From Eutreptiella sp. 'Long Island Sound 2002' (lineage: Eukaryota > Protista > Euglenida), in assembly GCA_964036045.1 (NCBI GenBank), contig OZ038379.1:2108001-2172000 (forward strand): DNA of 64,000 nucleotides, in the 5' to 3' direction. Below are positions 1,749-16,976 of this stretch, in pieces; positions within the stretch are counted from its first letter, which is position 1, and the number at the start of each line of letters is the position of its first letter. A program made the translations under genes and the position numbers. Below the pieces are notes generated by a model, which was not told where the DNA came from, did not search any database, and was given only the letters and a program-made list of their open reading frames with translations.

Positions 1749-1930
1749 CATGTAACCGTTGGGGTGTTACCCGGGTAACGTGTTGCCATACCCCCAGAGG
1801 TGAATACCTGTGTGTTACCGCCCATGTAACCCCTGGGGTGTTACCCGGGTAACGTGTTGCCATCCCCCCGGAGGTGAATACCTGTGTGTTACCGCCCATG
1901 TAACCCCTGGGGTGTTACCCCGGTAACGTG
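1749..1930. repeat. 74-bp tandem repeat, ~2.5 copies, GTTAC/GTAAC-rich
   Basis: CATGTAACC recurs at 1749, 1823 and 1897. Confidence 0.9.
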
Positions 1931-1993
1931 TCACCACACTGCCCCATTCACAAAACCAAGGGTACAAATAAAGAAACACACCCTTGCACATCA

Positions 1994-4062
1994 TCACATC
2001 GGCGTCTCATCGTCGGCCCCTGGCTGCTCCTCACCCGGTGTCTCCGACGGCGGAGGTCCTTGCGGCAGTGGCTGGGGTGGTGGATCCTGGGGCCGGTACC
2101 TGTACGGGTCGGACCCATACGGGAGGCTCCCGGAGCTCGAAGGCATCTCCGGATCCCGACCGGTGTCACCAGCATCCTCATCCTGCGTGAGCAGCGGTGC
2201 CCCCAGGGCCGGTGGTGGCGAGTAGACCTGTGTCAAAAACGGATGCACGATTGCTACGTTTTCTACGCATTGTGCGCATGTCATGTCAATGGAAGGCACT
2301 GCGCACACCACCACTTTGCTGTCCACGGTTGCCGATGGGGTGGATCCTTCGTCCTCGGCCTCGGCGTCTTCCTTGGCCTTGAGTTCCTCCTCGGCCTTGG
2401 GTTCCTCCGCATGGGCAGCCTCCCCGCTGCTCAACTCCCTCGCCGTCAGGGGTGAGTAGGCCTTTGCCCGCTTGCCTGCTTCACCTGAAAACATAGAGAG
2501 ACACACAGCGTTACCCAGAATTTTTGTTACCCGGGCTTTCGAAAGTGTTACCGCGTGTGTAACCGATGGGGTGTTACCCAGAATTTTTGTTACCCAGGCT
2601 TTCGAAAGTGTTACCGCGTGTGTAACCGTTGGAGTGTTACCCAGAAATGTTGTTACCCAGGCTTTCGAAAGTGTTACCGCGTGTGTAACCGTTGGGGTGT
2701 TACCCAGAATTGTTGTTACCCAGGCTTTGGAAAGTGTTACCGCGTGTGTAACCGTTGGGAATTTTTGTTACCCAGCAGCAACAGAGCACAAAAAACATAC
2801 CAAGGCTTGGTGGTCTGGCCTCCACTTCCATTGCCTGCACCCTCGCCCCCACCCTCGAGCCCCAATTCGGTTCACCATGACAGGGATGGCGATTCCCAAC
2901 CTACATGGGAACACAGTGGGGAACAGTGAGATGGCAGTTAAACATACCAATGTGCTGTTACCACGTGTGTAACCGTTGACCCGTTACCAGGGTAACACGA
3001 ACCACACACCTTCCAGTCAGTGCCCATCCAAAGCTTTCTCTTCTTCTTGCACTTGTGGCTCTGGGGTCTTCGGCCGCGTTGAGGGGGGTCCCATCTTCAG
3101 CCACAATGGCCGCACCTGTCACCCCCAGACACTGCTGGTAGTGGGTTGCAACCTGTTTGAGGCTGGACCCCAACTCTTCCCTGACATGGGACTTCGCCCG
3201 TTCAAGGTGTTGTAGGTAGGTTGTTGAAGTAAGAGTTTTTTCTGCCCTTGTGGGGCGGGCAGAGATGGACTTTGCCCCACCAGAAGCCGGCCCGGTAAAC
3301 ATAAAACTGGGGTGTGCCGTCTTCCCTTTCGCCTTTTTTGTTTTCCCCTTGGTTTGTGGTACTGGTTCGTCCTCCTCAGGGGTTCCTTCCTCCTGGACCA
3401 CCACCTCCTCGTCAGTCCCTGGTCCCTGGTCATCATCATCATCATCACTGTCCACCTCCTTGTCAACATCCATTTGGGACCTCTGCCGGACTGCCTTGGC
3501 TGCAACTGAAGCTGGGGTGAGTGTTCGGGTCTGTTTTGGGGGCTTCAAGGCTGATTTGGTGGGGGCTTTGCTGGCTGCTGCTGAATGACTGCCTGTTGCC
3601 TGCACCTCCTTGCCCCTGCCCTTCTCTTGCCCCCCTTTGTAAAATCCCCAGGTGTTCCCACACTCCTTTGCCTGAAAGGTCACTGGCCCGTGGAGGGTCT
3701 AGATGTCCAGACATTCCCCCTCATCAACGTCGTAGGCCAACGCCGTCTTCATGGTCAGGGCCGAATGGCTGCCCTTGGAAACCCAGCCGCAAACAAAGTT
3801 GGGCTGGCCTTGTTTCTTGGCCTTCAACTGCAAGGAAAGTAAGTGCAGTAAAAATGGGGGGTGTTACCACGTGTGTAACTGGTAACAGGTACGTGTTACC
3901 CAACCCGTTGAAAACAGGTCACAGCAAGCAATGGTGCAAAGGGGATACCTGAAGGACCACAGGAGCCCCGGCACGGGCAACATCACCCCAGCGGACACTG
4001 TACAACGTCGATCCGGCAGTCAGCTCCTTGTGAAACTTCTTGGGAACCGGCGGAAGGGGCAT
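1994..4062 (-). CDS. Spliced gene of unknown function (acidic/basic low-complexity protein), possibly pseudogenised
   Basis: ATG at 4062. Exon 4062-3949 (38 codons, CAG|GT) joins in phase 0 to an exon starting at 3827 (TTGCAG|). Further acceptors at 3671 (TTTCAG|) and 2484 (TTTCAG|) open ORFs 2958-3683 and 1994-2506. Phase across the last intron does not fit cleanly. Confidence 0.45.
2510..2775. repeat. 63-bp tandem repeat, ~4 copies (intronic)
   Basis: GTTACCCAGAA recurs at 2510, 2573, 2636 and 2699. Confidence 0.9.
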
Positions 4063-4282: not shown

Positions 4283-5280
4283 GCACAATTTTAGGTTTGC
4301 AAGAAATAGGCACGTCAAATCAAGACAAAAAAATTCATTGTGGAGTGCAAGGGTGTTAAGATCAAACTGACAGGGTCGTGAAGGTCGCGTTTTCTTGAGG
4401 GAATTTTATTTTCAATTATTATTGCACCTCTGCCCATTTGGTTGTTGTTACCGCTGATGTAACCGCTATGGTGTTACCCCGTATACCTATTACCGCGAAA
4501 CTCAAGGCTTGCAGCAGAACACACGACGGGCAGGTAACACATTTGCGGTAACAACAAGCACAAAAAGGCAAACTTTGCAATTCTTCCTGTCACATGTGTT
4601 GAATGAGAGGGTGACACTATGTTACCAAGGTCAGGCACCTCAAAAAACCCCCATATAACCCAACTTGAAAAAAATGACCTGTTACCCCAAATTTGACCCT
4701 GTTACCGCCCTAGATAAAGGAATATAACTTATGACAACTCAGACACATGGGTTTCTCTCCTGACACGAACTCAGGTCCCTTGACGCCACACCTTGCAGGT
4801 GTTTTTGAATAACAATGCATTCTAATTTTCCACTATCTTTTCGCTGCTGTGGAGTATGGCCGACCCAGGGGCAGGAAACCCGGCTAACCACCGGGGCAGT
4901 ACACCCCACAGTAGGCCCAGAAACACAAAAGCAAACCACAAGTTTTCCACCGCCCCTCCAGCAGTTGACTGCATGGAAACAAACATGGAAAAACACACAG
5001 AAAGAAAAACACAGCCTGCACTCCCCAGTGCACCTGCATTTTTCTGTGCGAGCTGAACCCAGCCCCCTGCTTACAACAAGCCTCAGTGCAACCAATTCAT
5101 CACCAAAACCTACCAATCAATCTACACCAAGAAACCATCAGAGCCATCTTTTTCGCTTTCCTAGGCGAACCGCCTCCGTGATATATTCTGTACTCCAAGT
5201 AGTGTACATATTCTCACGAGGTCTTCCTTTGGGGGACGTCAGCCCCAGAACAAGTTGATGCGGTTAAGAACATTCAAAAA

Positions 5281-5399: not shown

Positions 5400-6490
5400 C
5401 CCCTGCGAGCATGGGTTCCCTTGCACGGAGTGGCCAGATGGTCTACACACTTCAATCATTGTTGTCATGTGGCATTTGGACTCCCATGTGAGGATGCATT
5501 CAGCCGCAATGATTGTTGTTCTTTGGCATTTGGATTGCCCTGTTAGCATCAATTCACTTGCAATGAGTGGCTAGATGGTCTGCACACTGCAATCATTGTT
5601 GTTCTGTGGCATTTGGACTGCCCCGTGAGCATGAATACACTTGCACTGAGTGGCCGGATGGTGTGCACACTGCAAGCATTGTTTTTCTGCGACATGTGGA
5701 CTTCCTTGTGAGCATGCGCTCACTTGCACTAAATGGACAGATGGTCCGCACATTCCAATCATTGTTGTTATGTGGCATTTGCGCTGCCTTGTGTGCATGA
5801 ATTCACTTGCACTGAATGGCCGGATGGTCTGCACACTACAACCATTGTTTTTTTGTGGCATTGAACTCCGCTGTGAGCATGGCCATATCACGAGGTTTTC
5901 CTGACTCCCCACAGCCCCGCAAGCTGGGATCACTGCCACACAAGCGCATTCAGTCCTCAGGCAATGTCTGTGTTTTGTCGCGGCCAAGCGCACCGCTGCA
6001 TACTATTGTACAAATGTACACTGGGGTGCCTCTAGGGGCTAGCACGGTCATGGCCATCTTGCAGTGTGCCTGTTACCTTGGGAGGGAGGAGACCATCGTT
6101 TTTCTGTGGCATTTGGACTCCGTTGTGAGCATGGGATCACTTGCACCAAGTTGCCGCAATGTCTACATATTGCAACCCTTTTTGTTATGTGGCATTTGGA
6201 TTGCCCTGTGAGCATGGTTACACTGGTACTTATTGGCCGGATGGTCTGCACGTTGCAATGATTTTGTTTATGTGGCAATCCCAGTCCCGTGTGACCATGG
6301 GTTCACTTGCACTGAGTGGCCAGATGGTCTACACACTGCGATTATTGTGGTTTTGTGGCATTTGGCCTGCCTTGTGAGCATGAATTCACTTGCACTAAGT
6401 GGCCGGATGGTCTGCACACTGCAATCATTGTTGTTCTGTGGGGTTGGGAATCCACTGTGAGCATGGGTTCACTTCAACTAAGTGGCTGGA
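5400..6490 (+). repeat. 83-bp diverged satellite, two blocks separated by ~210 bp of unrelated sequence
   Basis: GAGCATG anchor at 5627, 5710, 5793, 5875 and at 6127, 6210, 6293, 6376, 6459. Confidence 0.9.
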
Positions 6491-7439
6491 TGTTTAATGT
6501 TATACACCCTGTGCCCCGGCCACATGCACGGGTCTAATCAATCACATTCGGGGTCGGCGAGGGTCCAGCCCCTTCCTTGCACCCCCCCCCCCAAAAGCCA
6601 CCCAGCAGGTTGCAGAGAGCACACTCATCAGCTAAGTGGGGGCTCATCTTGAATTCTTTGTCGGACTTGCTGAACCAAGCCAGGGATGGCATCTACTCGA
6701 TTCCAAGTGAAATCCGCTTGTTCTACCACTCTCTGGTATCCAACTTGGGATGTCTAGGCTTCGGCATGATCTCGATGGCAGCTGTTGAGGTTCTGGATCT
6801 CCAGGACATCACCACTTACCATTCAGTGAAAACATAGATTAAACAAAAACACATTCAGGCACGTGTGAATCATAGAATGCTAGTATTGTATAGGATTCAA
6901 GACAGAAACTCTAGTTTATCCGTAAACTTCAGCAGTCGTAGTTTGGTTAGCTTGTGTAGCCTATGTCGTTTCTTGGTGATGCATTCAACGACACGATGGA
7001 GCTCCAAAATAGGGGCATGGTTTGCACGGGTCGGGCAGACCGTCTCAGACGACGTTGAAGGAGGAAACCAATGTTTGACACATCGGGCTTATCAACAACG
7101 AAGGTGAATCGGGTCGCGTAACCAAAATGTGTTCCCGTAGTTTCGGAAGAATTGCATGCTGCAATAGTGCCCACACGGTAGGCATGCAATTATCCCCCTC
7201 CAAAATGATCGCATGCTGATGGGACACATTACATCGTTGTCCCTAATATGCTAGGAGCACGTTCGGTCAACCTCAAGGGAGGTCTGCAAGAAGAGCAAGT
7301 TGGGTATCAAGTCATGATCATCAGTATCATGTACGAGCCGAGGGAAGCGAGGCTGCAAGTTTTCTAGTTCCGGCTGCCATCGCAGTATGGATGCGGGCAC
7401 ATGATCATGCACAAAGACCTTGTTGAGAGCCACACCATG

Positions 7440-9438: not shown

Positions 9439-11359
9439 CTCGCAAGTCCCTCTATATATGCGGTTAAGAAACCGGTTGCAATGGTGGGAACAACACGCCT
9501 CTCCGCTCGTTGTTTCTTTGATCAAACACGGGTTACCCGCCGATTGGATATTGCCACCCCCACGCCCTCGCCCACTTTTTCACGCTCACGCTACACAAGA
9601 AATACAAGACGCGTTGGCAATCATGCAAGAATATCTAGAGGTCAAAGCAGTTCGCCGCGTGAATCTTCACTCAGGCATGCATTTTGTTCCATGGTTCATG
9701 ATCTACAAACCAAAACCCCGGTTCATAAGTGCGTGCGTGGATATCAACGCAAGGTTGCGTCCGCCGCCTTATTTTCGTTTGCCCAATTGGGGAAAAATCT
9801 TTCCTTATTTGGTAAAAGGTCATTGGGCACTCAAGATAGACTTAAAGCACGCCTATTTTCACCTCGCGCTCAGCCCCGAGCTAAAAAGGTATTTCAATTT
9901 TCAAATAGGATCCAACGTGTTTCAATGCGATTCCGCGTGCTTCGGGCTCCATTACATCCCGTATTATTGGACACAGCTAATGAAAACGTTCTCAAGCAAG
10001 TGGAGAGCGTTGGGGATCGTGGTCTTTATATATCTAGACGACATCATAATCTTAGGCCCGTCGCGCCGTTACTTGCTCCGCGTGCGCCCTCTGATATTGA
10101 GAGACTTAGAAGCCAGTGGAGTGACCATCAATTTTCTCAAATCCGTGCTAGAACCATCCCAAGTTATAGACGCCCTAGGCTTCGTTGTGGATTTCACAAA
10201 AGGAGAACTATTGGTTCCCGCTTGCAAGCGCAAGGGCTACAGGAAGGAAGCAGGAAAAGTTTTGGTTTCACCCGTCATGACGCCCCGCAAGATGGCGGCC
10301 ATTTTAGGCCGTTTTCGGTCTCTACTCCCAGCCATGCCAGCGCTCCGCGCATTCACCGATTTACTCGTGCAGTTCGTGCGAAGAGTCGACGATGTCGGTT
10401 GGGACACGCCATGCGTAGTGCCAATCGAGTTGAAAAATCAAGTGCGCACCATCACAGGTTTGCTACATTCTTGGCCACGTCGCAAGTTTGTGACAAGCAA
10501 CCAACAACCCCAAAAACATTTGGCCTCCGACGCCACATTGTTTGCGTGGGGAGGTCTCAACGTGCAAGACCCCCGACAAATGGTGCACGATTTTTGGCGT
10601 TTCACAGGGCACATCAGCGACAAGGAATTAATAGCGGCGGTGAACACCACACAATCGCTAGCCAAACCCAACGAAATAGTGGCTTTGGATGTGGACAACG
10701 CCACCGTTTATTCTTATTTAACAAATCAAGGCGGCAAGGTTCCACGGTTGAACAACCTGCTAAGACCGTTTCTCATTTGGTTGACAATGCATCGCATCGA
10801 ATTGCGTGTTCGGCTCGTACCGTCACGCCAGATGTTAGCCGACCCCATCTCTCGTTGGTCATTCGACCCAAGCGAATATTCTCTCAACCCTCTCATCTTC
10901 AGACAGATTCAAGACAGGTTCAAAAAGTTTTGCAGGCCGAGCATAGACATGTTCGCTTCTCCGAGCAACGCCTTGCTGCCCCTCTTTTGTGCCAGGTGGC
11001 CGCATCACCAAGCGATCCTCACCGACGCTTTGGCATGCCCACTGGAGACCGTAAAGGTTTGCTTCGCGCACCCCCCTTGGTCACTGATAGCACAATGGCT
11101 ACACCGGCTCAGAGCGAACCCCCATGTGACCAGTCTCACGCTAGTTCCTTGGTGGGATTCCGAGTTATGGTGGCCCCTATTAACCTCCTTGCACGTGAAG
11201 GGAACGCCAGTGCTTCGCATTCGCCCACGGTGGGGCCTTTATCTGAACTGTCAAGATCATTGCATGAAGAAACCAAGATGGCCCCTTCTTTGCATAGTGT
11301 TATCCGGCAGCGCCTACTCGCCCGGAATTTCACCGAGATTCAGATTGAGCAGCATTTAA
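9326..11359 (+). CDS. DIRS reverse transcriptase-RNase H-adenine methyltransferase-like polyprotein
   Basis: RT motifs: IDLKHAYFHL, FGLHYIPYYW, FIYLDDIII. RNase H motifs: SDAT, KELIAA, DNATVYSY, ADPISR. DIRS MT-like domain: IDMFASPSN, FAHPPWSLI, VPWW. Confidence 0.95.
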   Translation: MAKASPTAEATDEVLIPLTLNPPRLPPTPVQEAKVLNDSQVPLYMRLRNRLQWWEQHASPLVVSLIKHGLPADWILPPPRPRPLFHAHATQEIQDALAIMQEYLEVKAVRRVNLHSGMHFVPWFMIYKPKPRFISACVDINARLRPPPYFRLPNWGKIFPYLVKGHWALKIDLKHAYFHLALSPELKRYFNFQIGSNVFQCDSACFGLHYIPYYWTQLMKTFSSKWRALGIVVFIYLDDIIILGPSRRYLLRVRPLILRDLEASGVTINFLKSVLEPSQVIDALGFVVDFTKGELLVPACKRKGYRKEAGKVLVSPVMTPRKMAAILGRFRSLLPAMPALRAFTDLLVQFVRRVDDVGWDTPCVVPIELKNQVRTITGLLHSWPRRKFVTSNQQPQKHLASDATLFAWGGLNVQDPRQMVHDFWRFTGHISDKELIAAVNTTQSLAKPNEIVALDVDNATVYSYLTNQGGKVPRLNNLLRPFLIWLTMHRIELRVRLVPSRQMLADPISRWSFDPSEYSLNPLIFRQIQDRFKKFCRPSIDMFASPSNALLPLFCARWPHHQAILTDALACPLETVKVCFAHPPWSLIAQWLHRLRANPHVTSLTLVPWWDSELWWPLLTSLHVKGTPVLRIRPRWGLYLNCQDHCMKKPRWPLLCIVLSGSAYSPGISPRFRLSSI

Positions 11360-14110
11360 AAGTGTTAACTAGGGGCGAGATTTCAGGACGATAATCGTTA
11401 ACTCCGTCTCGCGGGAGAGTTAACGATTATCGTCCCGAAATCTGGAGGGACCGAGCCAGAGTTAACGATTATCGTCCTGAAATCTGGGCCAACCGCCAAT
11501 TCACCTGGGGTTGTGACCAATCACTAAAACCGGCTTTTCAAGCCGGTTCCAATGAGCCTATCCGGAAGAATTTTCATTTTTCAACCGAAAAAACGTTTTC
11601 GTAACCGGCAATAACCACGGTTGTCATGATGACATCGTTATGACAAGAGGAATAAATAACAAAATAACTAGTTTGCATAGAGGAAGAAAACTGGGTAGTA
11701 TGATGATAGTTGGCGAATTCGGAAATTACTTTGGCGGATGCGGCAAAGTATTTGGGTGTTTGCCCCAAAACGCTGGGTGTGTACCATCGGGCTGCTTTGA
11801 ACACCACGAACCGGGCTGCAACTGTGTTGAGCACATACCAAGAGCCTGAGGAGAAACCGAAGGTTGCAGCAGAGCCCGTAAAGGAACCGGAGGTTAAGCC
11901 CGAAGTTGTAGCGCAGTCTTCTGTGGATAGGGATGTGCGTGCCTCGCAGTCCTCTCTTTGCTCTTCCTTGCAATCTTTGAAGGAGTATGTTGTGGCTGAG
12001 GCACACAACTCCCCAGCGAAGGACACAGTTGTCTCTGAGGACATGTTGCCTGAGGCACAGGAATCCCCAAGTAAGGGTAGCAATGTTTCCGAAGACATTC
12101 TGGCTAAGGGTAGTGTTGCTTCTGAGGCTTTGTCTATGGTCGAGTCTCTGGATGTCCTTGCTAATGACCCTGTGGTTGTTTCCTCAGACTCGGAGTGGGA
12201 TTATGAGGAGCGCCCATTGACACAGCTTTCTCTCAAAAGGTCCCTTGAGGAGGCTAGGGAAAGCTATCATGCATCCGCTTGGGCAGCTCCCGCAGCACCA
12301 GCAGGTTCCCCTGTGAATCAGGACTTGTCCAAATACTCCTCAGCCGTTTAAAAAAATGCGGCGACCGTGCTTTCCTCCTCGGACCGTTCCTCGCGAGAAC
12401 ATCTGCTACAAGTGTTCTAGGGAGATTTTCGTTTTGCGGCCATAGCGTGGTGGTAAGCGGACTTCTTGCAATGCTTGCAATGCCCCTTTTCATGAGAAAT
12501 GCTTCTACAGCTCTGTTGTGAAGCCAGAGGATGGGGTGGGCCCTTGTTGTCTTGAGGCACAGTAGTATGCCCATCAATCTATCTATATATCGATCTATAA
12601 AAATTGACATGTGCATTGTTGCATGTTGTTGTAGAGTGGGACTTTTTTTTCCCATACGGGTTTTTTTTCATGCCCAATGTGGTTTTCAAGCGTTCACTCA
12701 CTTTGCTTTGCCTTGCACGTGCTTGAGGAGGGATGGGGCATGTGGCGCTGATATGGAGTTAACGATTATCGTCCTGAAATCTCGCCCCTTGAGTTAACAC
12801 TTTTAGGTAATCGTTCAGTGTTAACGCTTATCGTCCTGAAATCTCGGCCCGTTCGCTTCGCTCCTACAGGGCCGAGATTTCAGGACGATAAGCGTTAACA
12901 CTGAACGATTATGTAATAGAAAGGGCTGGGGGCATTGAATAGATATCAAAATGCATTTGCATTGTTGTTCGCAATGGCGCTACGTGATGGCCTCACCATC
13001 AATTCACCTTTGGACGCTTTCGTTGGCTTATTGTTAGAATTACATGCTGTGTCTCCTTCCCAAGCTTGCAATGCATATTCGGCACTTTTGTTGGTGCCTG
13101 GATTTCATGATGTAAAGTATCACCCGCTTTTGAAGCAGGCTAAAAAGGCATGGAACAAGCATTCCCCGCGCTACGCCGCTTTCTGGGATCCCGTTCCTGT
13201 CTTCGTTGCATTTCTCAATACCTCATATGATGTAAAGTACATTGCGCATGCACGCATTCGTCTCATTTTGCTATGGCGTTTTTTGGGCTTGTTTAGGTCC
13301 ATCGACTTGAGCCGAACCAAGAGGCAGGTGTCCTCTATTGGTGAGCGCCGATTCGTAGTCGTCCAACGCAAAAACAAACCAGATTACCGATGGGAAGAGA
13401 TCTTGATGTTACATTTGCACGCATGGTCGCCGTGGCATGCCCTATGCACATATGTAGAGTTGACGGCGCCTTTGGTGGCGCCCGGCTCAGCGCTCTTGAT
13501 TGCGCTTCACCGTCCATATTTGCCGCTAACGGCTGATACCATTGGTTCCTTGACACGGCGCGAGTTGCAGCGCCTTGGTGTCGACACGTCTGTTTTCGGC
13601 CCACACACCACGCGTGGCGCCTTTGTAGAATTCTTTCGTTTTTTGCAGCTACCTTCCGAAGTGGTGGCCGCGCTGGGGCAATGGGACAATTTGGAGGCTT
13701 TTTGCAAGCATTACTTGCGCGTTGGCGCATCCGGTGAAGCCAGGCAGGCCTTGAATAATTTTTTGGAGCAAACAGTGCACAACTCCTCACTTGGGTCAAG
13801 GGGCTCGAGCGCAGTACCGCATACTCACCGGGAGCCTGTCTTGCAGGTAACCAGGGGAGGAAGTGGTACAAAGCGAGAGCACCAAGACACAAGTGAGCCC
13901 AACCCGCCCAAACCCAAAGCGCCTAAGCGTAAGAGATCTATAGAGCATTTCCAGAGCCAGAAGTTACCGCGAGTCGAAGGTATGTCATCCCGTGGGCGTT
14001 CCACGACACGCTTTGTGGTAAATGATAGCGACTCCTCCGAGGGTAGTGTATATGTACAATCAGAAGAGGACGAGAACTGCTCCTCACCAACCACCGTCAA
14101 TCAAGAGTAA
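9481..14110 (+). CDS. DIRS tyrosine recombinase ORF, interrupted by insertion 11362-12922; long N-terminal part overlaps RT
   Basis: Removing the insertion joins ...QIEQHLK to GLGALNRYQNAF... in frame. Catalytic motifs FRSIDL (R), HTTR (HxxR), LGQW and KHY (Y) lie in 12935-14110. Confidence 0.9.
11362..12922. mobile_element. Hairpin-ended inserted element of unassigned class
   Basis: Six copies of a ~27-bp motif (GAGTTAACGATTATCGTCCTGAAATCT or variant). 27-bp stem-loop at 11378-11443, 43-bp perfect stem-loop at 12808-12911, and ~50-bp inverted repeat 11357-11405 vs 12755-12805. AAA is shared at both junctions. Confidence 0.85.
11710..12351 (+). CDS. ORF in the hairpin element: N-terminal helix-turn-helix-like motif plus acidic low-complexity tail
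   Basis: ITLADAAKYLGVCPKTLGVYHR resembles the MerR/excisionase-like HTH pattern LT..EAA..LGVS..TL. There is no ATG at the 5' end (starts TTG directly after a TAG). Confidence 0.4.
   Translation: MANSEITLADAAKYLGVCPKTLGVYHRAALNTTNRAATVLSTYQEPEEKPKVAAEPVKEPEVKPEVVAQSSVDRDVRASQSSLCSSLQSLKEYVVAEAHNSPAKDTVVSEDMLPEAQESPSKGSNVSEDILAKGSVASEALSMVESLDVLANDPVVVSSDSEWDYEERPLTQLSLKRSLEEARESYHASAWAAPAAPAGSPVNQDLSKYSSAV
13785..13897 (+). other. DIRS internal complementary region (ICR), embedded in the YR coding sequence
   Basis: 13785-13822 is complementary to 8219-8256, and 13818-13897 is complementary to 14142-14221 (80 bp). The two halves overlap at CGCAT. Confidence 0.95.
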
Positions 14111-15465: not shown

Positions 15466-16976
15466 CAATTGGAAGAGGCCTTTGATGGCCCGGCGGATGG
15501 GTGCCGGCGAGGTTCTTATAACGGTGGTTCAGGTCCCACCGCTTTTCCACAATGCCAAGGACTTGCAGTGCAGCCCCGAGTTGCCGTGTTGTTCCACAAT
15601 TCTACGGCGCAATTGGGTGTTGCTAGCTAGCCAACATTGTTGCACACCGGGCTGTGGGTACTCCCGGCAAGCAACGCTCCACATCACCCCATTGGCATGT
15701 TGCAACCATGGGCAGCCGACTTGCCATTCGGGTTTGAAACAACGCTTCTCGTTCTTGGCGGTTGGTGGGTGCACCCGTGGCCGGGGTGTGCATGCTTTGC
15801 ATACTACCTCCACACGGGGGGCGACATGCACTGCACACGTGGTATGCACCAGATGCTTGCATGTGTTGCATGCCCGCATGTCAGATCCAGGTGGTTGATT
15901 GCACACACGGCATACACATTTGAAGCAATGACCATGCTGCGTGCACAAGGCATGAACTTTGTGATTACAATTGGTACAACTGATGATATCCCCGAGCAGT
16001 TTGTCGTCACGGCAGGCAGATATGGGGAGGAAAGTGATAGGGCAGAAGGACAGGCGCGCTACCTTCGTATGAACTATCCTGGCTTTAGCCCCAAGTTTAT
16101 CCTCACCTAGGGAAGTCCCCCAAGTAGACCGCACTGGACCGCAAACCTTCCCTGCAATGCACGTTGCATAAGCCGAAATATGAGAATTCAACAACACAGA
16201 ATGTCACTCACAATGTGCTTAACAAACAATATTATTCCCACAAGTGTGGGTGTCAATACATTCAGCACAATAGTGCTCCTTACACTCACCACAAACTGTG
16301 ATAGTGGAGCGCTTGTGACAACACACCGCACACACTTCTGCCTCATCCTCTCCCTCATCGTGCGTGGCGGCCGAGTTGCTCTTGTCCGTCCAAACATGAG
16401 GCGGAACATGGTCCCATGGTCCATAAGGAGGGTGACGGACCTGCCTCCGAATGCAAAACTGAGAAAAATGCAATAAAATATGGACTGGCTGGTGCAACTC
16501 ATCGGGGCCACCACGCCAAATGGTTCCAAATGTCCCCAATGCCACAAGCGAGCAAACAACTGCTCAATGCGTGCCCGATACCACCCATGTACATCATTAT
16601 AGCATTGTTGCCGGCTGTCAAAGTTCCATTCTTTCGTCCAATGAATGGCACAATGACATGAATCCGGCCTTTATAAGCACCATCATGGCCCCCAACCTCA
16701 AAATCGAAGAAATCACCTCGGGTACAAGAAGGACCATACCCATCCCAAATGAGACCATGGTGGGGAGAGATCAATATGGCTACATCACCCTTGCCTTCTT
16801 GGAGTCCCCATGGTGGGGAGAAATCAACCTAGAAAGGAGTGGATGTGGTGGAAATGAGCAAAAAAATGTGTGAAAAAGGTCGAAAATGGGTGAAACCGGG
16901 GGCAAAAACGGTCATGGGTGGGGAACGGTCAAAAAAGTTTGCCCGGCGCGCGCCCGACGGACTAACACTCGCCCTA
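15465..16976 (-). mobile_element. Truncated hAT-family transposon (5' part)
   Basis: Terminus TAGGGCGAGTG at 16976. Encodes a TTF-type zinc finger typical of hAT transposase N-termini, and is cut off by the satellite before any catalytic core. Confidence 0.6.
15529..16545 (-). pseudogene. Cys/His zinc finger + PHD-like fingers + TTF-type zinc finger (hAT transposase N-terminus)
   Basis: CAVC..CGECKEHYCAEC..HTC (16219-16545). CTNC..HALC and CRVC..CNTC..HTTC..CKAC (PHD-like). FKPEWQVGCPWL..WSVAC..W..EQHGNSGLHCKSLALW (TTF-like). A stop at 15529 and a break between the ORFs. Confidence 0.65.

Follow-up and report, generated by a model that had tools for sequence, protein, structure and literature searches.

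A 1561-bp insertion that interrupts a DIRS-like tyrosine recombinase (YR) gene of the euglenid Eutreptiella sp. 'Long Island Sound 2002' is probably non-autonomous, shortened by internal deletion and mobilised in trans, and would belong to a family of hairpin-ended, Crypton-like DNA transposons. Alignments and a fold model suggest that complete members of this family have one protein-coding gene, for a Crypton-like YR with a terminal zinc finger of the PHD type (YR-PHD). The insertion lies in a 64,000-nucleotide stretch (GenBank assembly GCA_964036045.1, contig OZ038379.1, positions 2,108,001 to 2,172,000 of the forward strand), which we call the window and number from its first letter. Comparison across loci shows the element to be a discrete 1561-bp unit that is multicopy and has recently transposed.

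The insert occupies 11358..12918 (+), between host T 11357 and host G 12919, limits that were fixed by three whole copies at other loci (L002, L003 and L004) and by contigs of the empty site that join 11357 directly to 12919, recovered by mapping contigs of four public runs on window positions 10400-13900. A sequence-only reading of the window had described a hairpin-ended insert of 1561 bp at 11362-12922; its length, hairpins, subterminal inverted repeats (subTIRs) and six repeated motifs all stood, and four further copies together with the empty-site contigs shifted both ends 4 nt to the left, an ambiguity that arose because AAAA and GAAA stand at the insert edges. The element begins AAAAGTG... 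at 11358 and ends ...GTAATA at 12918, splitting a Leu codon (TT|G) of the host open reading frame (ORF), and excising its 1561 bp in silico reproduced the host frame ...EQHLK|GLGALNRY that the earlier reading had put forward. The empty DIRS site, found in contigs from two organisms' runs, reads CATTT|GAAAGGG, and a diverged DIRS copy reads CATTTA|AAAGGG at the same place; uninterrupted siblings exist, and, in line with that reading, the element is not native to DIRS. The termini are asymmetric, AAAAGTGTTAAC ... GATTATGTAATA, and complete copies without exception start with AAAAGTGTTAAC (A or G at position 11) and end in ...AACGATTATGTAATA.

11358..11369 (+): 5' terminal 12-mer AAAAGTGTTAAC, present in all copies and subfamilies examined, with A or G at position 11 and a host T before it.
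12912..12918 (+): conserved 3' terminus, the tail TGTAATA, identical in 11 ends from several subfamilies.

Insertion takes place at T^(G)AA in a single orientation and leaves no target-site duplication, the 5' AAAA being invariant and the 3' flank variable. The 5' flank ends in T in 10/10 independent copies (a chance of ~2e-6 at a T frequency of ~0.27) and in TT in 9/10, and in 9/9 copies the 3' flank opens with A or GA and continues with A or T. In L008 the 3' end abuts the 5' end exactly, head to tail, at two places (GTAATA|AAAAGTG). We found no signature of a standard terminal-inverted-repeat (TIR) superfamily in the element, which, with the missing duplication, agrees with the sequence-only reading. 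Several conventional explanations of the edges were rejected: with a TA duplication the predicted empty site is incorrect and out of frame; a duplication of AAA or AAAA is at odds with a 3' flank that varies and a 5' AAAA that never does; a TTAA target duplication would need the TTAA that is missing at the right end; and a crossover within AAAG or TAAAAG microhomology predicts junction sequences that were not observed.

We drew the loci from the contigs of 15 protein clusters homologous to the internal ORF, all in one ENA assembly. L002, L003 and L004 hold complete copies at 99.0-99.9% identity over 1561-1562 bp within unrelated flanks, bearing out the proposal of a multicopy non-autonomous family; L005 holds a copy truncated in the 3' hairpin and a 297-bp miniature derivative, and L006 and L007 represent a subfamily ~78% identical to the window copy, in which L007 keeps the order subTIR, hairpin, TGTAATA. 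L008 and L009 contain clusters of rearranged copies, and the copies in L001 and L006 are too decayed for full ends to be read. In the four public runs, the k-mer depth of the element is 10-30x that of its DIRS flanks and is greatest at the ends; an exact motif pattern scan of JGI metagenome contigs gave no match. The TIR part and the 3' hairpin travel together as one unit, because every complete copy has the same outer termini. As a separate observation, L008:3340-4980 is a dense mix of whole, miniature and inverted copies, one of which has an inverted 5' end as its right end. At 12 positions within 11639-12694 the window copy alone departs from the three full ENA copies, and at 9 of them the window shows a C-to-T or G-to-A change, perhaps through deamination of methylated sites or because the strains differ.

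The ends of the element are built around a 25-nt motif, GTTAACGATTATCGTCCTGAAATCT, of which there are six copies with 0-1 mismatch in the order R,F,F...F,F,R (F, forward; R, reverse); it was found nowhere else in the 64-kb window, where 0 occurrences are expected by chance. The repeats and hairpins are as follows.

11357/11358..11410 (+): 5' subTIR, ~50 nt, pairing with 12750-12804/12805 (40 nt at 95%, 14 nt at 100%).
11378(-), 11419(+), 11461(+), 12758(+), 12820(+), 12875(-): the six copies of GTTAACGATTATCGTCCTGAAATCT.
11378..11443 (+): 5' hairpin, arms 11378-11404 and 11417-11443 (27 nt, 96% complementary) around a 12-nt loop, made of an R and then an F motif.
11415..11490 (+): two 42-nt tandem units with one F motif each; three units in subfamily L007.
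12750..12804/12805 (+): 3' subTIR, inverted-repeat partner of the 5' subTIR.
12808..12911 (+): 3' hairpin, an 18-nt loop on a stem of 43-51 bp formed by one F and one R motif.

The 5' arm of the 5' hairpin is nested in the 5' subTIR, and within the subTIRs a perfect 12-nt inverted repeat (11358-11369 against 12793-12804) is adjoined by TA dinucleotides. The arms of the 3' hairpin extend to 12800-12850 and 12869-12919 (51 nt, 94% complementary), with the core 12808-12911 fully paired. As single strands, the 5' and 3' hairpins have folding z-scores of -9.2 and -16.5, respectively, against shuffled sequence. In subfamily L007 the stem of the 3' hairpin is just 9-10 bp long, with the same conserved base TAATCGTT...AACGATTA and the TGTAATA tail kept; where one subfamily has GTTAAC in the motif another has GGTAAC/GTTACC, a change made on both arms that preserves pairing. 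Read on the other strand, the 3' subTIR and the left arm of the 3' hairpin form a degenerate head-to-tail junction, ...GAACGATTACCT|AAAAGTGTTAAC..., an internal pseudo-junction that was found in all copies of both subfamilies. Whole-element and joined-end folds, computed with RNA energy parameters, give a single strand in which the subTIRs pair and stack on the 3' hairpin, bringing the termini together, and a ~107-bp hairpin from the joined ends, with the junction in a small internal loop.

A side observation concerns the 18-nt loop of the 3' hairpin, which, viewed from the 3' terminus, points one way in some copies and the other way in others ('flip' and 'flop') and could have been turned by recombination or template switching between the long arms. 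The loop sites are these.

12851-12868: window.
4860-4877: L005.
3395-3412 and 3739-3756: L008.
5239-5256: L009.

Between these structured ends lies the remnant of a gene, which ties the element to a recombinase family.

11710..12351 (+): ORF remnant, the sole ORF of the element, 213 codons, no ATG.
12350..12356 (+): A7 run, at which the frame shifts relative to the intact relatives P0006, P0011 and P0013.
12356..12565 (+): remnant of a nuclear localisation signal and a PHD/C1-like zinc finger, with a stop at 12443-12445 and a frame change by comparison with intact P0006, P0011 and P0013.

The first ~45 residues of the ORF align with the C-terminal end of a tyrosine-recombinase domain that includes the catalytic Tyr (VYHR; codon 11782-11784), and they are followed by an acidic linker and a conserved SEWDYEERPLTQ block. 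The intact relatives, L007 included, share the layout of this tail: an acidic linker, a SEWDY(D/E)E(R/H)PLTQ block, a basic stretch and a PHD/C1-like finger, for which the Pfam C1_1 and PHD scores fall just under the cut-off. The sequence-only reading had taken the start of the ORF for an excisionase- or MerR-like helix-turn-helix (HTH) protein that might bind its own repeated motif, and neither part of that proposal survived. All HTH matches are sub-threshold (HTH_17 at 14-17 bits against a cut-off of 27), and the segment aligns instead with the catalytic-Tyr C-terminus of a YR; the ORF lacks an ATG and carries a frameshift and a stop, and in that state it cannot supply the protein that binds the motif.

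By its lesions the window copy is judged to be dead as a gene. Its 99%-identical siblings carry the same lesions, P0001 stopping at the same codon with no variable site there, which means that the gene was already dead when the window subfamily spread. Comparison of subfamilies gives a dN/dS (nonsynonymous over synonymous divergence) of 0.25-0.45 at a dS of ~0.6, and close pairs give ~0.8; these ratios indicate that the gene was under purifying selection earlier in the history of the family. Direct searches with the remnant returned little: an exact-sequence look-up of the 213-aa ORF in public collections found nothing, an Atlas feature search gave nothing above 0.9, PDB sequence-profile searches gave weak PHD matches and no recombinase, and an AlphaFold model of the ORF (pLDDT 48) was too poor for a fold search.

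The recombinase assignment comes from the wider protein family. A profile search of 1.84 billion representatives retrieved 80 cluster representatives, several of which match the "HTH" part alone and extend upstream of it, and the window sequence ...KLANSEITLADAAKYLGV..TLGVYHR lines up in alignment A3 with the end of a ~270-residue conserved domain carried by P0046, P0089, P0093 and the intact 651-aa ORF of L009.

P0046: 507 aa, on a 1.8-kb Logan contig.
P0089: 405 aa, in L014, with 21 cluster members.

With an AlphaFold model of P0089:115-405 (pLDDT 58), Foldseek returned tyrosine recombinases, type IB topoisomerases and QRICH1 as the sole folds among its best 50 matches, with E values of at least 0.03, and an exhaustive VIA search placed the Crypton-derived domain of QRICH1 first among its best 20 (Z 7.1), the others including topoisomerase IB, XerH, XerD, Tn1549 Int, Cre, Ndc10 and lambda Int. 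Across the alignment the catalytic positions read as follows.

Arg I: R in 5/6 sequences, C in one decayed copy.
Beta-hairpin Lys: conserved.
His II position: Lys in 13/14 sequences.
Arg II: conserved.
His/Trp III position: Val, Leu or Ile in all.
Catalytic Tyr: conserved.

The Crypton catalytic set R-K-H-R-H/W-Y is thus incomplete in YR-PHD proteins, which keep R, K, R and Y. They have no Pfam match to DUF3504, and no reverse transcriptase (RT) was found next to the full-length relatives in L009, L013 and L014. Taken together, the alignment and the fold comparisons indicate that the "HTH" of the window is the tail of a Crypton-like YR that would end in a PHD-type finger.

The same gene recurs beside distinct sets of end motifs. 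L009:~1815-3975 holds a compact 2.15-kb element whose sole gene, on the minus strand, is the intact 651-aa YR-PHD ORF; copies of a palindromic motif of its own, CCGGGTTATATAACCCGG, flank the gene, together with a hairpin whose arms are 51 nt long and an inverted repeat of 30 nt (97%), and the element is a good candidate for an active autonomous one. In L014 the P0089 gene is flanked by different motif arrays. At 52% identity, the window ORF is most closely related to a YR gene in L001, decayed but nearly complete in length, which is followed by the 25-nt motif and subTIR of the window family. Three families (the window family, L009-A and L014) each pair a YR-PHD gene or remnant with end motifs of their own, a pattern that random gene capture does not predict. 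Two further observations were made in L014: a 415-bp miniature of the window family lies at 6378-6793, 1.2 kb upstream of the P0089 gene, and long GGTAACAC/GGTTACAC arrays that resemble the terminal GTTAACAC of the window family lie downstream of it at 9840-12890.

We propose that a YR-PHD enzyme supplied by a complete relative would bind the repeated motifs and excise or copy the element as a circle in which GTAATA is joined to AAAAGTG. The junction and the inverted internal pseudo-junction would then form a long hairpin with the crossover point in its small internal loop, and the enzyme would recombine this site with A-rich targets. The exchange may be single-strand and followed by replication, which would explain the constant AAAA of the 5' end and the lack of any trace of duplication or heteroduplex. 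Circle formation, binding to the motifs and the chemistry of recombination are all inferred.

Several results weigh against a recombinase-driven family. Among the loci examined, none contains a complete copy with the exact window termini and an intact YR-PHD gene, and the anatomy of the element is of the Helitron2/Helentron passenger type. Pfam and PDB sequence searches detect no recombinase in YR-PHD proteins, both canonical catalytic His are replaced (by K and by V/L/I), and the fold matches are uniform yet weak (model pLDDT 58, E at least 0.03, Z at most 7.1). Classical tyrosine recombination involves a 6-8-bp overlap, under which the target version would be expected at the 5' junction in about half of the copies; it was seen in 0/10.

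The alternative that takes this anatomy at face value holds that the insert is a non-autonomous rolling-circle element of the Helitron2/Helentron type (HINE/DINE-1-like), moved by the Rep-helicase (RepHel) of a partner, with the YR-PHD fragment as captured cargo. HINE/DINE-1 elements have subTIRs, a 5' inverted repeat within the 5' subTIR, a 3' stem-loop near the end and no target modification (PMC4067079), and the likeness noted in the sequence-only reading holds point by point, including the internal tandem repeats and the host T at the 5' junction. Beyond the 3' subTIR comes the 3' stem-loop, which stops 7 nt short of the terminus and is kept in two subfamilies; the empty site confirms insertion without target modification; precise head-to-tail junctions are expected of rolling-circle elements (PMC5876387); and an invariant 5' end with no heteroduplex trace fits one-strand transfer. 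Asymmetric termini, subTIRs, a nested 5' repeat, a 3' stem-loop, tandem repeats and head-to-tail dimers are thus common to both systems, whereas the repeats and hairpins of our element are several times longer (subTIRs of ~50 nt against 12-15 nt), and insertion into a TT dinucleotide with T runs on both sides has no counterpart in an element that starts with AAAA and has A or (G)AA, not the T of a T^T insertion, as its 3' flank. No RepHel gene was found in the 14 loci examined (~120 kb), and none is linked to the ends of the element. The internal ORF, which appears to derive from a tyrosine recombinase and to have been under purifying selection formerly, and the pairing of gene and end motifs in what we read as three families also speak against captured cargo, and on balance we regard a Helitron2/Helentron passenger as unlikely, though a reading to be taken seriously.

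The two remaining alternatives had both been raised in the sequence-only reading and fare worse. From a single copy, the perfect 12-nt TIR and its adjoining TA make it possible to see a TA-flanked TIR element (11359-12803) beside a separate 114-bp hairpin element, but the full composite stands at three other loci with identical outer ends and unrelated flanks, the ~78%-identical subfamily keeps the order subTIR, hairpin, TGTAATA, and the TA duplication predicts an out-of-frame empty site where CATTT|GAAAGGG is observed; the composite moves as one unit, and two neighbouring insertions are improbable in the extreme. Hardly more credible is intron-like removal from the DIRS transcript, by GT-AG or by euglenid non-conventional splicing, that would leave the host gene working. 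Splicing from GT at 11362-11363 to AG at 12918-12919 would keep the host frame in this copy and add a single Lys, and the ends of the element can pair as those of non-conventional introns do, but the AG needs a host G that is missing in L002 and L004, and GT-AG splicing, tied as it is to a host base, is no family-wide property. The Euglena non-conventional code, 5'-N3-CDG...CHG-N5-6|R with paired ends (PMC12501133), is absent at both ends (AAA-AGT, ...ATG-TAATA), where the exon-start purine is the one feature that fits, and no element-skipping RNA contig was seen in one metatranscriptome, a weak negative given that its coverage missed the junction-proximal DIRS flanks.

Among known tyrosine-recombinase elements, Cryptons offer the closest comparison for the proposed hairpin-ended YR-PHD family. 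They carry a tyrosine recombinase alone and have 4-6-bp direct repeats but no TIRs or structured ends (Goodwin 2003; Kojima and Jurka 2011, PMC3212892). Like them, the YR-PHD relatives appear to encode a single YR-type protein without reverse transcriptase; the best structural match of YR-PHD is the Crypton-derived domain of QRICH1, with Ndc10 listed too; and a circular intermediate would be the expected route for both. The element has no true target-site duplication, and the similarity of AAAA and (G)AAA at its edges is comparable to the Crypton direct repeats, albeit imperfect where these are 4-6-bp terminal direct repeats. Unlike Cryptons, it has ~50-nt subTIRs, hairpins at both ends and family-specific motif arrays, and the C-terminal module of YR-PHD would be a PHD-type finger, not GCR1_C. 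Bacterial IntI and XerCD recombine folded single-stranded hairpin sites, integron attC and CTX-phi attP, respectively. The element resembles these in a hairpin that would hold the crossover point, a minimal target, a defined polarity and the lack of a duplication, as one-strand exchange plus replication would produce, but those systems are bacterial and use canonical enzymes, and single-stranded intermediates of our element are hypothetical. Replitrons, with short direct terminal repeats and a Rep HUH gene (PMC10288648), were set aside: no HUH motif was found in the ORF protein family, and the termini are not short direct repeats.

On the analogy with integron attC and CTX-phi, we tentatively raise the idea, itself rather doubtful, that YR-PHD elements are a superfamily of eukaryotic DNA transposons in their own right, as yet undescribed, in which a His-less YR would act on a joined-end hairpin by one-strand exchange. 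If so, Helitron2-like anatomy and scar-free, oriented insertion would result from YR action, and some passenger families called 'Helitron2/Helentron-like' on anatomy alone, here and perhaps elsewhere, would be recombinase-driven; such anatomy may not be diagnostic of rolling-circle transposition. What would be new here is a structured-end, PHD-bearing, His-less branch of tyrosine-recombinase DNA transposons. To our knowledge, Cryptons are poorly understood, their ends have been described as featureless, and no mechanism has been tested for them. The present family offers handles in its sharp ends and exact empty site, its copies at 99% identity, its end-to-end junctions and its motifs that change with the gene, as well as substrates for biochemistry in the 25-nt motif, the junction hairpin and the compact 2.15-kb intact relative.

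The host of the insertion is a DIRS-like element, which uses a YR as the YR-PHD family is predicted to do but carries a reverse transcriptase, RVT_1 being found in the ORF upstream of the host YR. YR elements are numerous in this genome. The interrupted gene is in two parts.

11278..11357 (+): start of the host DIRS-like YR ORF (MAPSLH...EQHL).
12919..14110 (+): remainder of the host DIRS-like YR ORF.

The nearest Atlas clusters of the downstream 391-aa host ORF are Phage_integrase/ALOG at 0.96-0.97, BLASTP of P0046 against the DIRS recombinase showed no similarity, and the nesting of the element in a DIRS YR gene appears incidental. DIRS siblings differ at the interrupted Leu codon (TTG or TTA), which marks the DIRS family as multicopy and diverged and confines the insertion to the lineage of the window copy. 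Elsewhere in the window, a 222-codon ORF at 15529-16197 (-) shows PHD-type Cys/His patterns (CxxC...HxxC) and gave no tblastn match with YR-PHD proteins, a single ORF of 7157 codons spans 19682-41155, GC skew reaches ~-0.45 to -0.5 at 22-30 kb, and GC content stands at 74-79% from 30 to 40 kb.

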